Both the position numbers and the translations under genes were made by a program. The notes under the pieces were generated by a model. The model worked only from the letters and a program-made list of their open reading frames with translations, ran no database searches and was not told where the DNA came from. Of a stretch of 64,000 nt of DNA, positions 48,246-58,124 are shown piece after piece. Position 1 is the stretch's first letter; the number at the start of each line of letters is the position of its first letter. Source of the stretch: Pavona decussata (taxonomy: Eukaryota); NCBI GenBank assembly GCA_977016875.1, contig CDRNST010000104.1, positions 1,550,001 to 1,614,000 of the forward strand, given 5' to 3'.

Positions 48246-49529
48246 TTATCCCTATACTTTATTGGCGTCGTATGCATGGCACCAAGCGCACGTAGACGAG
48301 TAGAAAAAAAAATAAAAATTTTAGAATTCATTTCCGTCGAAATGTTAACCCCATGTATAAACTGTTTTCCGAAAATGAAATACATTTTAGGGTACCAAAC
48401 AAAAAGATGACAATCTGTGGCTCCATCGCGGTGCCAAAACTGTCACAAGTAATTGAATATTCCGCCACTTCACTTCGACATACTTTTTTCGTAGAGTCTC
48501 TTTCACAGACATCAGTTAACAGTCAGGCAATTTGCTTTTGTTGAGGTCTACTGAAAGAAGGTTTTGGTGGGATGTAGTTAGCGCAAAATGGCATTATGAA
48601 CACAATACATGTGCCATAACTACCCTCATCCTTCAGATTTGAAGAATATTGTAGTGCCTCTGTACAGTTGACTTGTGAGGTGGTAGGCGGGGAAAACTAA
48701 TTAAAAATTACTCAACAGGGAAAAGGTGTTGTCCATTCCTAAAAGCTCGCATTCAATTCAAAGTACCACAGCCCACAGTACATTTTTACGAGGAAGCAAA
48801 TGTCATTTCCTTTCCTCTTGGCTTCATTTAAAAGTTCGATGTCTGCGTTTTGTGCAGCTCTTACCAGTGTTGGGTCCATTATAATTGGCATGTTCCTGTG
48901 GAGATCTCGCAATTCATGGCTGGCATTTACGTTCTCGTACTTGAAGTCTTGATTTATTCCAACATTTAGGGCCTTCGCGAGGCTTGGCTGCCCTTCATAT
49001 TGCTGATGCTTTTTGGACAGACTGGTTATCTCTGCTATAAACTGCAGTGATAAAATTTCCCTCCAGATGCTCTGCTAGAGAGCGATGTATAATGAGGAGG
49101 ACATTGGGGGGTTCTGAACACCGCAACACCGCAAAAAATATTGCCGAACACCGCATCACCACAAGTAAAGTCTGTGGAACACTGTCACCGCAATATCTAT
49201 TTTTAGTCTGATGATTTAAGCGTCAGTACAGGATAAAGCCTTCAAGATTTTGCCTTTGTCCTTAAGAAAAGTTGTGAAACAAACATAACGAGGCCAAAGC
49301 TGTAGTTACTCTGCATATGCCTTTTGATGTTGGTTGTTACGTACACTTTGACGCTAGAATACTAGAAGATCTATGAACTTCAGCCGAAAAATTACCGCTG
49401 CCTCGTGCTACAAGAACATTTCCGGAGAGTTGTGTGTTCTGACATTGTCACAGAAAAATACTCCTAGTCTCCTTTCTTGAATATTTAAGTTTCAGGCTTT
49501 AAAACCTTTTAACTAATGGTACTCGGGCA

Positions 49530-49857
49530 ATAGGCCGTATGCATGATCACGTAACATGCCCGAAAGGCAGTATGGTAGTTGTAGTCACACTCAAATCCAA
49601 GATGGCGTCAATAGTGCTAGTAGCGGGGGAAAAAGAAAAAGTACGTAGTATTTGACCTATCTGAAGGCTCAAACAAATACCCTGAGAAGCTACTCGACCG
49701 CCCGGCCACATCAGAACACTTGTCAGCATTTCTGCCATTTAAATTTCCCGCTTCGGGGAAATACAACGCCATATTGGATTCGTGGGTGACTTCAACTACC
49801 ACAATGGACGTTCAAGCCGCAAAAGCATTGTTTTACGTCATTATAGATAAGGTTTAT
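49530..49857. mobile_element. MITE inside the 3' region of the 8-kb element
   Basis: Internal inverted pair ggtagttgtagtcacactcaaatccaagatggcg / cgccatattggattcgtgggtgacttcaactacc, with imperfect outer TIRs. Confidence 0.65.
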
Positions 49858-49871
49858 GAGGATGGAAAAAA

Positions 49872-52800
49872 TTAAAAAAATAGGCGATTATTAAAATGAA
49901 TGGCTCTTCCAAAGCGTGACTTTGCGCCAAGTAAAAATGTCGTGGAGCTTCCAATCTCTTCTTGTAAATAGTCTTCACTTCCGTTGCTGGCCCCTGCATC
50001 ATCCTCATCATTACTTTGGTCATATTCCGTGTCATCTCCCCTTTCATCGATTCTAGCTTCTTCTTCTTCTTCTTCTTCTTCTTCAGTTTCCTCGAAAGAG
50101 ACATTTATAGCCTGTTTGGCACTGATGCAGTGTCGTTGATACATGTACTCAGGTAGAGTGCCATGCTTGGCCATCGTCATCTCCTGGCGCACTGTCCGCT
50201 GTCGCACTGCGGCTCCATACGACGAGGCCCAATCTCGTATAACATCGCAATGTGCCTTTGACATCTCAACAACAGGAAGTGGCTTGATCGAAGGCACCTT
50301 CGAAAATGGAATGGACTCCTCCGGTTTTGGGTACCATGATTTTCTGCTTGTGTGGTAGTAAGCCGCCCAGTGGGTTACCCTTTTGACTGACTCTTTCATT
50401 GTAAGACCAAAAGAACGTGAATATTCCATCATAGACATGTTTGCCTGTTTGATGTGCACGGTGGAATGGCAATTTTCTACATCAAGTGTCATACAACTAA
50501 GGAGATTTGTTGCATCGTAATTGAATGGCTCTAACTTGCTGTACAATCTTTGTAGTCCCCATTCAACAAGTGCAACAGAGGCAACGGTCTTGGCGGAAAC
50601 GTGACCCTGAGGTCCATTAATTGCGCCTGTAATGCCAGTGCTTGTCCTGATATCGTTGGTGTTCCTATCTAGAAGTTCTTTGCATTGGTGGACAAGCGAA
50701 AGCGCTTCATCGGCAGACTTTACAGAGTAGCTTGCTCCTTTACAATGGACAGAAAAAGCGTCACAAAGCTGCCCAATGGAGTTAACAAATTCAGCGCACT
50801 CAACCATCTTCGTACAGATTTTGATATAATTCGTCTGGGCATCACAGATATGAATGACACTTTCTGACTCCGTGCAAATGCCTATTGGCTGTCGAAACCG
50901 ACAGTCCTTTACTTTGCCATCAACATTCCCTTCCTTTCTTTCGCTGCCGGCAAAAAGTTCTACCTCTTCATCTGTCTTGATCTTCCACACCAATGCGTGC
51001 TTTTGGTTACTGAACAGGATTTGTGAGCCAAACCTAGTCAACATGCAAGGTTCATCGTCCAGTTGAACGATAGTTTTACACTGTGCGCTATCAAAAGAAA
51101 CTTTACTGATCCCCTTGCAGTGCGATAAAAAGAGGCTTCCTTCACACAAACACATGCTGTAGATCTTTCGTCACAAATGGTCATACTTAATAACTTCTTG
51201 CATGTTTACCCCTCTCAGTCCGACGCCATCCTTTTGCACTTGAAAAGAGACAATGACTCAGACGTCCTTCCTTGCAGCGTAGATCAGCTCATCATCTCGC
51301 ATAGCATAGCTTCAAAGGAAGGCCGTCTTTCGAAATTCCAGAAATGAACTTCATCATTCTTTACGTTATTCTGATTGTATTTGGATTTGAGGGTTAAAGA
51401 GTAGCGATTCAGCCTTTCCTTTAATTCTGCAACAGTCCCCGTTGGCGTCAGCTTTAGTTTATTTGCAAGGTTGACGAAATCATCTTTTTTCTTTGGCTTG
51501 GTCAAGATGTTAATTGCCCCATCTGCAAACGGGATTGCTTTTATAGGCCCACCGTCAGATGTTAGGAAGATGATCACATCAGCACAGTGGAGATCCCTTG
51601 CTTTAAGTTGCTTCCCGATTGCTGTTATCTTGTCCACAGGACTATGCAGGCAAGCTTTGTGTAGCGTAGGGAAGGAACTCTTCACATCATATGACAGAAA
51701 TGCTATCCATCCGTACCACGGAATGGCAACACTTATTGGCGAAGGAAACATACCCAATTGGTTGTCGGCGGAATATTTGTCTAGCTCTGGGATGATTGTA
51801 TGACAGACGTAGCCAGCCTTTTTCAACTCATTGGTCAACTTAGTGTTGCTAAGAGTGGGAACGGAAGATGGGTCTTGTCTATCTTTATTCTTGACATGAT
51901 CGTTTTTGTGGATAAGCTTTCTGAAGGTTTTTTTTTGTTTTTTTGTATGAGCGGTTTCTCAAAGTACGTATCAAAGCCAAATTACGTTCGCCTTTACATT
52001 TCAGCCACCAGTTTGAAAAAGCAACTTTCATGCTTTTGCCAACATGTGGACAATCTGGCAATACAGACAAAAATCCAAGTTCAGGATCTTCGGTTCCGGC
52101 TTCTAATTTTTCTTAAAGTGTCTCAAGGGCAGCCTTGTTTCCGCTTTCGCAATCACTACAAAGTATTGCCACAACTCGACGACAACAAACAGTGTTTGCT
52201 TCCCGACATGCATCACAGAAGCACAACGAGGGTAAGTGGCTAACCTGTCCCAATAATGTGCATTCATCGCATACTCTTTTCGACTCGTAGCACTCTTCAC
52301 AAAAGCTATTGCAGTTAATTCTTTGGGAGGAGATAATATGACGAGTATGAGGCGCTTGTTGCTGGCATAATTCGCACGCTTGTAGAGTTTTTATGTGTTC
52401 TCTGAAAAGATCTGCCATAGCCTCGCCAGTTTTGCCACTTTGTGTGGTGTAATCAACTGCCACAGGAAGAGAACAAAAGTTATCCAGAGATGTCAAAGAA
52501 GAAACGATTGCTTCGGTAACAATATTTTCCTTGAGATACTCGGGAGAGGGTGATGGATTCTCGTGAATATCGACGGGTTTTTGAGACCAATGTTTTCCTT
52601 TAATCGAGGATCGAACTTAATAGCCGGTTTTAAAGCTGTCCCATCATTGGCAAGAGCACAAGGGATCACTATTAGCTCAGGTGTTTTGATCAACGGTTTA
52701 GCTTGTAAATTTTTTAATAGCTCTAGGTGGCCTAAAGATAGTGGCTTGATAACACCTGATTCTGGTGTGTATTCGTCCTGATACTTGGCACACACCGATT

Positions 52801-55800
52801 CCGAGGGCCCTCCAAGGTTCATTTTTTTATCTCAGATTCAAATGGCTATTTCGGCCATCTCCTAAGTTCATTGGCCCTCTGATGAAGCAGGTTGTGCGTT
52901 TGCCACCAAGGTAGGTGATTGTATTGAAAAATTCCACAACCTCTTGGGCATATTCGTGGAAAAGATTGTACATTATCTCCAACACATCATTCAGATATTT
53001 ATAAAAAATCCTTTCCTTTGATATCTTTCCTCGTTGAAGGAGGTCTTGTAACTTAACGCATACTGGATCCACCTGCTTGATGCCAATATGCACAGTGAAG
53101 AGGTCATCTTCGTCAATACTGTCATCCGACAGCATTTGGTCGACCTCAGTGCACGAGCAAACCCCCACAGAATCATCATCCATGTCTGAGTCAACGAGTT
53201 CCTCGTCAGTTCTGTCATCGTCCTCATAGGAATCCCATTCCCCTCCACTGGAGTCATATGTTCTAGACAAGAATAGTACAATTAAGGTTTTATTTTATCG
53301 TGTCAAGCAATTAAATACAGGACCATACAGTCGTAACAAAAACCAAAAGAATTAACTAAGGGTAATTTGGTCAATCAACAAAAATCGAAGATATTTCAAT
53401 GGCGTAATTGCCTTAAAGTCCTTAAACATAACCTAAAAAACCAACAACGGATTAAACGGCAAGTTTTACAATGAAACGTAAAATATCCATGAAATTACAA
53501 TATTTTGCCATGTCGTTCTATTTTTTCGATACATTTGAGCCGTTAGGAAAATACAGTGATGTGTTTGACAGACACAAAACTATGTTTACTTGTCACAATC
53601 ATCCAGATCTAGGTCCGAATCTCTCCTTGGCCTTTTGGTGTTTTCTCCTTCTCGTTAACTTTCTCTAGAGCTGTTCGTTTAGCCCCATGCATGTCCATCA
53701 GTTTCTGTTGACGCACAGTAGTTGCTGTTTTAGAGCTACACTTGGAGTAATGATCTATGACAACAAGAGACAAAATGAAAGAGGTTAGATAAAAATGTTT
53801 TTAACTCACCGCTTTATTGTTTTTCTACATTTCAACTATAATTATTAAAAGGTTATTTTATTACTACTTTTTGATAGTAAATGCCCACCTGACTCAGCTT
53901 CGTAAATATACATGGCAAATTTTTCGCCTGCATAATGACCATGAAGTTTTATAGAGTTAATAAATGGTTAAAAAAAGCGCAACTGCCGTATTCACGATTC
54001 TTTTTCGAGCCATGTATAGATAAAATAAAACCTATCAGGGGGGTCTTTTGCAACCTGTGTGGGACTTAATCTGGGATTACGTAACATAGCGTAAACAATC
54101 AGTAAAACTGAACTTACGTAGGTCAAAAAAGGCGATTCGTCCTTTCAGATCACTATCGTATCTCAGCTGTATATTGCGTTTGCAAGTGCCACACGTTATC
54201 TTCCATGGCCACTGTACTTCTTTGCCACTTTTCCCTCTTGTTTTCACAACTGCATGTTTGCCACATCTGATCAGTTTACTCCCGCATCTCTTGACCAATT
54301 CTAAACAGTTACGAGAAAGTGTTGATTGTCGAAATAAGCTATTTTCGATAGTATTACCCTCGATGCGATTTCTTTTGTTTTATTCCCCCAGGGCTCGGAG
54401 CCAAGCATGAATTTTTATATAATATATATGATATATTTCCACCATTACCTTCATTCAATTTTGTTTTTTCTTTCTCTGTGAGCTCCACTGGACCCATTGA
54501 AGGTGATATCGATGGTGTAGGCGTTAACGTCTTGCAGGAGCAGCTCTCCTTGATTTCAATTGTTGGACAGTTCTTGGAGAAAACAGTTTTAATAGAATAG
54601 ACAAAAACTGGAAGTGAGAAAAACAAAACAGGAAAAACATTCAGGCATTACAAAATTTATTATTCCTGCAGGTACAAAATCACTTGGTACAAAACTATAC
54701 AGCAACTTTTCGCTATTCCTATATTTTTAGATATACTCGCATATATTTCGCGCACCAGGTTGACAGGTGGGTTTTGTTGAACCCTGGCCGAGAAAAAGCG
54801 CTGTTGTAATAAAAAGGTGCACCCTCAAAGCAAAAAAGGAGTAACTTATGTTGAAATTTCTCTTTGCTTCTTAAAATTGTTGTTCCCTGTTTCAAATAAG
54901 AAAACCAACATAGACAGTGAAGCTCTACCTGCAACTAGACAATTTACGAGATCTAGTAGGACATCGAGAAGTAGTGCCATTACTTATATTCCTAACCGAA
55001 GCAGAACTCTTACTTATCAACGTTCATTTTTCATACGCGCGTGCCGCACATGGAATGTTCTTCCCACTGAGCTACGCACAAGTCACATCTCTTTAGCTTT
55101 ATTCAAAACTTTATTACTTCAATATTATAAAAAGGCTTTGAACTTGTACGACGCTGACGACATTAGAACTTGGAGAACAATCTGTCCTGTATAACACAGC
55201 GAGGTAACAGTCCTGTGTAACACAGCGAGGTCTCTCCTATGCCCGCCAACGTGCTGCTTCTAGCAATTTGGTCTCCCGCCTTGTCTCCTCTAGTTTTATG
55301 CTTACATATTAGTAGCTTTAGTTATTAAGCATTTTTTTTTTATATAAATAATTAACAAGGGATCCACTGTAATTGGCTACGCTGTAGTGGTCTCCCTGCC
55401 TAATTATTATATCTTTGTTTTTTTTTGTTTTTTTTTTGTTTCTATTGTTTGTTTCCATTCTGTTTGTATTTTAGTTAGGCGAAGCTAAATAAATAAATAA
55501 ATAAATAAAAAAAACCTGGTGTAAAAATTATCAGATCAAACATACTTCTTAACAGCATGAAAGAAATATGGTTAAACATACCTATTTAACAGGACCTCTA
55601 TGTTGTCTCCCAAGCCTAACCTTTTGGCTGTTTTCCGTATGCCAGAACGTTCGCTAAATTAAAAAGAACATATTTATGCCATTAGCATAACTGCAGCCTT
55701 ATATAACTAGCTCACTGCCTTCATAAGCTATTGACGGGGTTGACTGGTAAACAATCCTGAATAATGATACAACTCCCGGGTAGGGAAGGGTGGGATAGGA

Positions 55801-56794
55801 ATCGTCCAGTGTTTGGGTATGGGGGGAGGGGGTTTGAATTCCTGACCCTGTTAAGGCCAAAAATAACCTGAAAAGAGTACATTATTTTGGAAAATATCCT
55901 CCCCATAGGGCTTATAAATTATCTGGTCCTGAAAATGATTTCGTGTTGATTGATGACCTGCTAACCTGAATGACGAACCTCTCCAATTTTGTATTGCTCC
56001 AAAATACTAGACGATAGTGTTGTGCTATACCCTTTCTGAGACGTTTTCACACCCTGTTTAAGACACACTTGCTTGAATTATATACTCTATTCAGATCCTG
56101 TTCAGGGCAGAGAGGCCAAATTACATAAACCAGCGGCACGTCCCTGTGTTTACTTTTTAAACTCAGACCAGCCCGCGACTTATTTATTCTAGCCAAAACT
56201 AGTTTTCGCATTACCACGTTGGCTTGAAATTTTACTGTTTCTTTTTTTTTTTTTTTTTTCCTCGGTTATTTCTTTTTTAAATATATAAAAAAATACACAA
56301 GGGCAAGTGCAAAGAGCGGGAGAGTTCACTTTCCTTACCCCTCCCCCCGTCCCTCCCCCGTAGTCTCCCGTGGCCTGTTTATTTCCATTCACGCGCTTGA
56401 TATCAATAGCCATTTGACCCATTTGAGAAAGTAGACAAAAATAGTGATCTAAACAGTGTCTTAAAGGTCCCAGAAGATCAAACGACTGTGGAGTGAGCTT
56501 AGACCGATATTAGATTGACCTCCGTACGACCTTATACAGTTAAGACTAGCTACGATATTCAGATACAGAGACAATGCGTGTAACTTTCCAAATGCATTCT
56601 ACAAACTTCGCGAGTCTCTTTTCCTCCTTGTTTATGGAGCATCGAAATTTGTTTTTCCACCTATAGTTCTCTCCACCTTTGCCCTCCTCATAAAATAAAG
56701 CTACGCAATGAACTACGTATTCAGGATCGACAGGATCAGCTGCATCAGTCACGAGGTTTTCGCTCATCTTGCCTGATGGACCGGACGATGACAT
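49872..56794 (-). pseudogene. Spliced P-element/THAP9-like DDE transposase gene with a C2HC finger, Cys-rich insert, NHL repeats and SAP domain (frameshifted)
   Basis: Exons are about 56794-56583 (tentative), about 54575-54449, 54300-54118, 53754-53590 and 53262-49872. The last three introns have phase-compatible GT-AG junctions. Motifs: GGPSES..ESGVI..CALANDGTALKP..FD (D1), ILCSDCESGN (D2), PDCPHVGK (DxxH), TLDVENCHS (E), SAP-like LANKLKLTPTGTVAELKERL, NHL-like FAGSERKEGNVDG...FRQPIGIC. Confidence 0.8.
54905..55512 (+). mobile_element. 3' end of a CR1/L2-type LINE inserted in an intron of the 8-kb element
   Basis: RSRTLTYQRSFFIRACRTWNVLPTELR...FKTLL followed by an (AAAT)n/poly-A tail at 55487-55514. 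Confidence 0.75.
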
Positions 56795-58124
56795 GTGGTG
56801 ATCCGGGTCACGAAGGTCACGTTGCTTATCAAGTTACTTAATATAAATGAACAACAGGTGTAGGATTAGTGACGGGCAGCGTATTTAATATTAACTAGAG
56901 AGTATTAGAGAACCCTTAGCGTGTATTTTATTTCAAATCAAACATGATGGGGGCCAAATTTAGAACTGACAAGCATCAAAATGGAAACTGTGACACCGCA
57001 GACAATTTCGTTTCATCGAACACCGCAGACTTAAAGACGCAAACATCGCACACCGTGACGTTTAAGAATACCGCAACACCGCAAGCTGAGATTTTATTCA
57101 CCGCACAAAAAAATACCTAACACCGCAAATCCCCAATGTCCCCCTCTATAATCTTCGTGGGTTGTCCACATGCTCTTTTTTTGCCATCCTGGGGCAGCAC
57201 TTGCGCTTGCAGCAAGGGAAGACGCTTTACGTGTCCAGCAATAGTGTCCGTGTAACTGTTGAACCATAGCCCAGTTTTAACTTGGAACCGAATGAGAAGC
57301 CTGTATCTATCAGCGATGTGGTGTTATCTTCGCTTAACAGCCAAAATCTGTGATTTTTCACCAAACAGCTATGTGATGTGGAATATCTCTTTCAACACGC
57401 ATGTCCTGTCTCTGCCATTCAACTGAACCACATTTGGTGTACTGGAGATGGGCTTTAAGAGATTTTAAAGATAGTCTTTTTTCTTGGTACTCATTCGCCA
57501 TTTAAAAATCAATTTGTTTTACGGGTGCTTGGTGCAGTTTCGGCTCTGCGCTTGTCAGGAGCTTGTTTTTCTGGTCACCTTCCCGTCTCCTTCGGGCACC
57601 ATTTTTACAGCCACTGGAGTTCTCGTGCATGGACCAATGTCTTCCATGCTTTCGGATCTTACTTCCAGGTCCTGGATAAAGAAAGGTATGAAATCGTACT
57701 TTATTTCATATCACATACTTGTACATAAGGTACGAGTTTACGCTTTTTGTCTAAACATGCATATTAATACGTATAAAATTTAGATAATTTGATTGTCTGT
57801 CCCTAAACTTGTTTGCATGTTTTTGATAAGAGTAGTTATTGTAAATACTTATTGAAAGGCATTTAACTTCACAGCAAGATGGAGACAGTTGGTTCCAAAA
57901 AAATCTCATATTTTCAAATAATACAATCATAGAAGATACTTGCAAGTAATCTCTTTCATGTCATTAAACTAAACTATTGCCATTTTGCCATCAATGATAA
58001 ATGGCTCTTTTTTGGCTAGTTGTTTGTAATTAATTTTACCAAGTTGTCACTGTCATTGCAATTCTGCCTGGCTTTTCTAAGAATACCCTCCTTAAGCGTC
58101 ATCAATCTTGTTTCCACTCTCCAC

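Follow-up and report, generated by a model that had tools for sequence, protein, structure and literature searches.

A decayed, probably P-like DNA transposon of Pavona decussata with a predicted NHL propeller and SAP motif nested in the transposase insertion domain

A 64,000-nucleotide stretch of the genome of Pavona decussata (assembly GCA_977016875.1, contig CDRNST010000104.1, positions 1,550,001 to 1,614,000 of the forward strand; hereafter the window, whose own numbering is used throughout) contains a decayed cut-and-paste DNA transposon of 8.05 kb at 49094-57146, with the transposase gene on the minus strand. We consider it probable that the element is a dead P-like transposon whose transposase had an RNase H core split by a helical insertion domain, and that this insertion domain held a nested NHL β-propeller and a SAP motif, for which we propose a role. 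The catalytic residues of the enzyme and its propeller are conserved in homologs from distant animals, and the architecture is recovered by structure prediction.

Homologs of the transposase are present in Priapulus, Mytilus, Oculina, Clytia, and Branchiostoma, where their database names are only “uncharacterized” or “hypothetical” protein; the ESM Atlas likewise holds the family as a “hypothetical protein” carrying NHL and SAP labels only. Forty-one full-length homologs were aligned, and residues are numbered according to one of them, P0034. Candidate catalytic residues D200 (N-D-G-T-A-L-K-P), D365 together with E367 (T-D-C-E-E-G-N-K-K), and D397 (P-D-x-V-H-V-G-K) are present in 41/41 sequences; H400, in the same D(2)H motif as D397, is present in 39/41, and E922 (V-E-N-L-H) in 36 of the 37 sequences without a gap at this position. 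A first-pass annotation, made by a model from the sequence alone, had placed a DxxH motif at about 52055 and the final catalytic E at about 50476, with roughly 500 codons in between. These positions hold: the D(2)H aspartate and histidine are encoded at 52055-52053 and 52046-52044 within L-P-D-C-P-H-V-G-K, the glutamate is encoded at 50477-50475 within V-E-N-C-H, and 526 codons separate the D(2)H aspartate from the glutamate. The second D and the E lie 557 residues apart. The conservation of D, D, H, and E that the annotation had asked for is found in the alignment. One full-length member, P0151, is filed as “MAG: hypothetical protein [Sedimenticola sp.]” (MAG, metagenome-assembled genome) and is probably animal host DNA that was binned into a bacterial MAG.

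The interval between the D(2)H motif and the catalytic E is predicted to encode a helical scaffold, a complete six-bladed NHL propeller, and a SAP helix pair located between blades 2 and 3. In the AlphaFold2 (AF2) model of the full-length protein (predicted local distance difference test score [pLDDT], 82; predicted template modeling score, 0.79), the helix bearing the D(2)H motif is followed by helices at residues 423 to 470, a strand at 473 to 479, two four-stranded blades, helices at 580 to 618, four blades extending to residue 815, helices at 817 to 905, and the helix of E922; the model is confident across the domain junctions. Residues 470 to 816 superpose in VIA on whole six-bladed NHL propellers with Z scores of 22 to 25 and a root mean square deviation (rmsd) of 2.7 to 3.4 Å over 240 to 277 aligned residues. 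The structural matches include Pizza6 (over its entire length), TRIM71, Lin41, NHLRC2, PknD, and teneurin. According to the model, residues 470 to 816 form an NHL propeller with all six blades, into which a SAP motif is inserted.

Sequence comparisons identify the same two modules. When the family profile was compared to PDB sequences, NHL and SAP proteins were matched and no transposase was; the NHL matches comprised SOQ1 (7e-24), NHLRC2 (5e-20), and also teneurin-like proteins, Thin, TRIM2, TRIM71, and Brat. The profile also matches the SAP domains of ERI1, Hcc-1, E1B-AP5, and MKL1. Pfam NHL (PF01436; cutoff, 20 bits) is matched by 8/41 members, as is Pfam SAP (PF02037; cutoff, 23.9 bits; best E value, 3.7e-7), and paralogs in the coral genome score 90 bits (L014) and 26.5 bits (L013) for NHL and 95 bits (L014) for SAP. 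A 427-amino-acid (aa) C-terminal piece from the window matches giant NHL-repeat proteins in phmmer, for example P0006, which is matched in 41 stretches (E value, 7e-82) and itself scores 1161 bits for Pfam NHL. The SAP segment of the window aligns to the family and gives no Pfam match itself. The peptide quoted as NHL-like in the first-pass annotation was located at 50963-50835, within blades 4 to 6, and the proposed SAP-like helix pair at about 51400-51470 corresponds to a peptide at 51478-51401, inside the SAP segment of the family (51502-51377); the sequence matches bear out both identifications, and the VIA matches bear out that of the propeller.

The propeller is a property of the family. 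Every full-length homolog (about 30; 41 aligned homologs) contains the NHL segment in collinear position, with invariant blade glycines, and no propeller-free family member was found among the database matches: every shorter relative is a truncation or a gap-containing gene model that is collinear with the profile. The pieces of the window copy have no Pfam match, and frame changes and stop codons fall in this region, which would fit a captured gene fragment or a nested insertion peculiar to this copy. We give that explanation virtually no credence, given the collinear segment in the 41 aligned homologs and the confident modeling of the junctions; the capture of an NHL fragment by this copy alone is ruled out by the collinearity together with the lack of propeller-free relatives.

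As the first-pass annotation supposed, the propeller could be a ligand-binding module, recognizing RNA as in TRIM-NHL proteins or else a protein, that directs or gates transposition, rather than a structural or DNA-contacting unit. The fold fits RNA-binding NHL domains equally well, the TRIM71 and Lin41 complexes being matched at Z scores of 23.6 to 23.8, and the propeller is conserved across phyla. One report describes RNA binding by the NHL domain of Brat (PMC13245067). In sequence, however, the propeller is far nearer to SOQ1, NHLRC2, and teneurin-type proteins (7e-24 to 1e-6) than to TRIM-NHL proteins (3e-4 to 0.26). Because its nearest NHL relatives by sequence are not the RNA-binding TRIM-NHL proteins, RNA binding receives no particular support, and we regard a ligand-binding module as unlikely.

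Because the full-length model filled the Foldseek and VIA lists with propellers, the catalytic half was modeled alone (AF2, residues 50 to 480; pLDDT, 78). The best Foldseek match of this model was the Drosophila P element transposase (6p5a, 1.4e-7; 6pe2, 2.5e-7). The matches that followed were to ISCth4, TnsB, Transib, Hermes, and retroviral integrases, the next family being at 7.9e-4. In VIA, 6p5a was superposed with a Z score of 8.2 over 265 residues, and integrase cores superposed at an rmsd of 2.2 Å. Strand β5 and the D(2)H helix had a pLDDT of 34 in the N-terminal model and of 94 to 95 in the full-length model, an indirect sign that the C-terminal part completes a split RNase H fold. On these models, the N-terminal half is an RNase H DDE core. 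Of the features that the first-pass annotation had anticipated from structure prediction, an RNase H fold and a six-bladed propeller were returned in the AF2 models; the P element transposase was the top Foldseek match. The core also contains a cysteine-rich module (P0034 residues 291 to 354) that comprises two C-x2-C-x6-C units, is modeled with a pLDDT above 90, falls in a gap relative to canonical P transposases, and presumably binds zinc.

To place the family, its profile was compared by hhalign to one built from 30 canonical P transposases, among them proteins annotated as “Transposable element P transposase” and “DNA transposase THAP9.” The unmasked comparisons were used for the register of motifs only. 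This register was consistent: the first D, the second D, D-x-x-H-x-x-K, R-M-x-V, T-x-x-F, S-x-x-T, and the glutamate of Q-D-P-L-E were aligned, with the Cys module in a gap. Statistical weight was placed on a comparison in which the Cys module (291 to 353) and the propeller/SAP region (472 to 816) were masked, and on its reversed control. The masked profile aligned without a break over 340 columns that run from the first D to beyond the E (probability, 86%; E value, 4.8e-6), whereas the reversed profile gave an E value of 0.63. The mask boundaries were picked after the model had been seen, making the masked comparison a post hoc test. The alignment suggests homology of the helices on either side of the propeller with the P-type insertion domain, one loop of which would accommodate the propeller. 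Judged from this alignment, the propeller is nested in a P-type helical scaffold and is not simply a substitute for the GTP-binding domain. The first-pass annotation had described the interval as a DDE insertion domain with an added propeller; the assignment to the insertion domain of a P-like DDE enzyme with an NHL propeller and a SAP motif stands, and the refinement is that the propeller lies within the helical scaffold.

Other likenesses to the P element and THAP9 transposases (6P5A and 6PE2) are consistent with this placement. In both, the RNase H DDE fold is split between β5 and α4 by an insertion domain, a D(2)H motif follows the second D, the E lies in an L/V-E-N/x motif, R-M-x-V and T-x-x-F helices are present, an HTH (helix-turn-helix)-like region precedes the core, and the C-terminal tail is acidic. 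TNP-like_RNaseH_N (cutoff, 24.6 bits) was the only transposase family matched in Pfam, by 3/41 members at an E value of ≤0.01 (best, 7.5e-6); P0060 reached 1.9e-4 and 22.2 bits, under the cutoff, and one Mytilus homolog has a precomputed PF21787 match. The sequence evidence indicates that the family is most likely a divergent member of the P element/THAP9 kind of DDE enzyme. Canonical P/THAP9-like transposons with RNaseH_N, GBD, and RNaseH_C domains are present in the same genome (L020 to L025; G000 contigs C58, C13, C251, C78, and C216).

The boundaries of the element were identified from terminal inverted repeats (TIRs) and target site duplications (TSDs). The window copy ends in 16-bp TIRs and is flanked on both sides by TATAAT. 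A second copy (L018/L019, G000:C8:1727669-1733035; hereafter the C8 copy) is 93 to 96% identical, has both ends as in the window copy, and is flanked by CTCAAT. It lacks the sequence corresponding to 54029-51523 while retaining both ends and therefore derives from this element by deletion; blades 1 and 2 are gone along with the catalytic N-terminal half, and a 511-aa open frame for the C-terminal part is retained. Short nonautonomous copies of 1.2 to 2 kb have the same ends. These copies (L026 to L030; G000 contigs C196, C137, C185, and C115) have the same terminus as the 3′ end of the window copy and share the 16-bp TIR and subterminal sequence at 70 to 80% identity, and they have 6-bp duplications of their own (TTTTAG, CTTGCG, CAAAAA, and CTTTTG). 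In total, a copy-specific 6-bp TSD was present at each of six independent insertions (the window copy and five others). L028 and L030 have identical flanks and probably represent a segmental duplication. Window positions 55490-54879 are missing from the C8 copy, the flanks on both sides being common to the two; either the window copy has gained a nested insertion here or the C8 copy has undergone a further deletion. A 41-nucleotide inverted repeat (49568-49608 and 49766-49806; 83% complementary, with a 157-nucleotide spacer) lies in the 3′ subterminal region, downstream of the stop codon.

The assembly searched for further copies comprises 602 Mb. With the 427-aa C-terminal piece as query, it yielded more than 100 protein matches, most of them broken and a few within open frames of 1100 to 1200 aa. 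The paralog L014 (1881-5354, plus strand; G000 contig C86) has a 1158-aa open frame that starts inside the Cys module, so that the first catalytic D is missing; its SAP-plus-NHL unit is present in three tandem copies (three Pfam SAP matches, 1.5e-27; three NHL matches, 3.8e-26). The persistence of long open frames in the genome, and the annotation of homologs as “uncharacterized protein” in several animals, would be compatible with a domesticated host gene family instead of a transposon. This is highly improbable in our judgment, given the TIRs, the copy-specific 6-bp TSDs, the deletion derivative, the short nonautonomous copies, the scattered and mostly broken matches, and the decay of the window copy itself. 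Individual lineages may nevertheless have domesticated a copy. The transposase family was mobile in the past.

The gene in the window is a pseudogene. Its large exon, of about 1100 aa, was recovered as six open pieces in two reading frames that jointly span positions 10 to 1117 of the 1118-position family profile. The copy has four frame changes, near 52830, 52575, 51940, and 51300, and three in-frame stop codons, at 52115-52113 (TAA), 51260-51258, and 51173-51171. Searches were run with each broken piece and each putative 5′ exon by itself; these were never joined, mended, or turned into a consensus. In the 3.9 kb that separate the 5′ end of the element from the large exon, stretches are matched collinearly in tblastn by the N-terminal extensions of the homologs from Oculina (P0175), Clytia (P0180), and Priapulus (P0050), and these stretches probably represent small exons at the 5′ end of the transposase gene. 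The exon nearest to the large one includes a CxxC...HxxxC finger (54202-54089; W-x-W-K-V-x-C-G-x-C ... H-x3-C, a BED-like CCHC pattern), which is common to the annotated homologs of Oculina, Clytia, Priapulus, and Mytilus; the histidine position is altered in the window copy. The positions of all features are listed in Table 1.

Table 1. Positions in the window of the transposon termini and of the transposase features, in ascending order
Feature	Position	Strand	Remarks
TSD, 3′ side of the element as transcribed	49088-49093		TATAAT, 6 bp; same hexamer at 57147-57152
TIR at 3′ end	49094-49109	-	16 bp, GAGGAGGACATTGGGG; inverted repeat I6; homology with the C8 copy stops here
C-terminal helices and acidic disordered tail, up to the stop codon	49872-50366	-	AF2 model, mapped to the window
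Transposase large exon	49878-53204	-	hmmsearch with the family profile; tblastn with P0034, P0026, and P0060
Helix with catalytic E	50376-50504	-	E at 50477-50475 (V-E-N-C-H); E922; aligns to the E of canonical P Q-D-P-L-E
Three long helices after the propeller	50523-50804	-	AF2 helices 817-905; hhalign to the second half of the P-type insertion domain
NHL blades 4 to 6	50808-51113	-	G769, G772, and G779 invariant or nearly so; own sequence matches NHL-repeat proteins
Blade 3 remnant	51170-51330	-	Frame reading fits the family consensus; outside the hmmsearch matches; frame change at ~51300, two stops
SAP helix-loop-helix between blades 2 and 3	51377-51502	-	AF2 helices 580-589 and 598-618; pLDDT, 92-95
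Propeller closing strand (51811-51791), blade 1 (51739-51650), and blade 2 (51634-51530)	51530-51811	-	AF2 strands 473-565
First helices of the insertion domain	51818-51980	-	R-M-x-V motif; hhalign to the start of the P-type GTP-binding domain; 6p5a aligned up to residue 428
Strand β5 and D(2)H motif	52011-52070	-	Aligns to the invariant DxPHxxK of canonical P transposases
Strand β4 and following helix, with second catalytic D	52116-52187	-	D at 52154-52152 (S-D-C-E); D365 and E367, 41/41; in-frame TAA follows
Cysteine-rich module, 10 invariant Cys	52185-52382	-	Between helix α1 and strand β4; C293-C354 invariant
RNase H strands β1 to β3, with first catalytic D	52443-52675	-	D at 52645-52643 (A-N-D-G-T); D200, 41/41; aligns to the first D of canonical P
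Probable small 5′ exons	56716-56591, 55643-55581, 54614-54453, 54301-54089	-	tblastn E values of 7e-10 to 2e-3
TIR at 5′ end	57131-57146	-	16 bp; TSD adjoins at 57147-57152

Several observations weigh against a P-like transposase with a nested propeller. The window copy is broken, and its six pieces gave no Pfam domain at an E value of ≤1, the Pfam signal for NHL and SAP appearing only through its relatives. The unmasked hhalign comparison to canonical P transposases reached a probability of only 3.5 to 7%, most members remain below the TNP-like_RNaseH_N cutoff, and neither TNP-like_GBD nor THAP was matched in Pfam by any of the 41 members. To our knowledge, no Kolobok structure is available for comparison. 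The TSD is 6 bp long, compared to the 8-bp TSDs made by P elements and zebrafish THAP9 elements (PMC7776569).

In other respects, too, the enzyme differs from the P element and THAP9 transposases. An NHL propeller and a SAP motif are predicted in a loop of its helical domain, a 10-Cys module lies between α1 and β4, a CCHC finger in the probable 5′ exons stands in place of the THAP domain, and the TIRs are 16 bp instead of 31 bp. The differences in TSD, TIRs, and N-terminal finger, the missing GBD match, and the subthreshold TNP-like scores would all suit a separate DDE lineage of the DxxH type, equal in rank to Kolobok, hAT, or MuDR, that is P-like in fold only; the anatomy of propeller and SAP motif would be unaffected. 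The DxxH motif itself is common to hAT, Kolobok, P, MuDR, and IS256 (PMC3706591). We nonetheless consider a separate lineage decidedly unlikely. The P transposase is the best solved match by about four orders of magnitude in E value before the next family, the masked alignment extends through the helical insertion domain of canonical P transposases, and TNP-like_RNaseH_N is the sole transposase family matched.

The Dada superfamily was considered because of the 6-bp TSD. Dada elements encode DDE transposases with a DxxH motif and generate 6- to 7-bp TSDs, and some have a DEDDy exonuclease domain inside the catalytic core; they have no TIRs and many exons, insert into small RNA genes, and show a spacing of about 176 residues from the second D to the E (PMC3706591). 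The present element resembles them in its DxxH-type transposase, in the length of its TSD, and in having an extra domain in the catalytic core, as some of them do. Dada was ruled out by the presence of TIRs, the flanks that vary between insertions, and the much wider spacing of the second D and the E.

The predicted propeller is a typical one placed in an unusual setting. Like the NHL propellers of PF01436 (SOQ1, NHLRC2, the PknD sensor domain, teneurin, and TRIM71/TRIM2/Brat), it has six blades and is closed by an N-terminal strand; unlike them, it lies inside the catalytic domain of an enzyme instead of at a terminus, and a SAP motif is inserted between its blades 2 and 3. No description of an NHL propeller or a SAP motif in a transposase was found in the literature searched, Repbase being outside the search. 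A possible parallel is RAG1-RAG2, in which a Transib-derived DDE recombinase has a six-bladed kelch propeller as its partner. By analogy, each system would combine an insertion-domain DDE enzyme with a six-bladed propeller, but RAG2 is a kelch-type propeller on a polypeptide of its own, whereas the propeller here is of the NHL type and is fused in cis inside the insertion domain. RAG2 was not among the listed structural matches of the model.

The SAP motif is a DNA-binding motif, and the insertion domains of DDE enzymes are positioned at the DNA junction, where they influence the chemistry, as in the hairpin handling of Hermes, Tn5, and RAG1 and the GTP control of the P element. The insertion domains characterized so far structurally resemble one another (PMC7776569). 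In the P element, the domain is located between β5 and α4, packs against the site where transposon and target DNA meet, and binds a GTP that positions the terminal base (PMC7776569). Going by the P element structure, catalysis was most likely ordinary DDE cut-and-paste. The propeller and the SAP motif, modeled with a pLDDT of 92 to 95, may form a rigid unit whose most likely contribution is additional contact with DNA via the SAP motif. A DNA-contacting or architectural role is suggested because the P insertion domain packs on the DNA junction, SAP motifs bind DNA, and this lineage lacks a THAP domain. The unit may also be a protein-protein platform beside the active site that serves the assembly of the transpososome or engages a host chromatin partner.

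A more far-reaching reading, to which we assign a low though appreciable likelihood, is that the propeller-SAP unit serves in regulation or targeting. It might correspond to RAG2, fused in cis, or be a reader of a host chromatin protein, a nucleic acid, or a small ligand that replaces or supplements GTP control, and it would then gate cleavage or pick targets; the family would represent an animal lineage at the superfamily level with a 6-bp TSD chemistry of its own.

A propeller and a SAP motif in the insertion domain, conserved from cnidarians to amphioxus, would be a different solution from the insertion domains characterized to date, and the arrangement suggests a way of coupling transposition to a bound partner. 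The family has been present in databases without the name of any transposase family. Intact open frames bring a structure and assays of excision and integration within reach, and the compact end sequence with its 6-bp TSD may interest tool builders.

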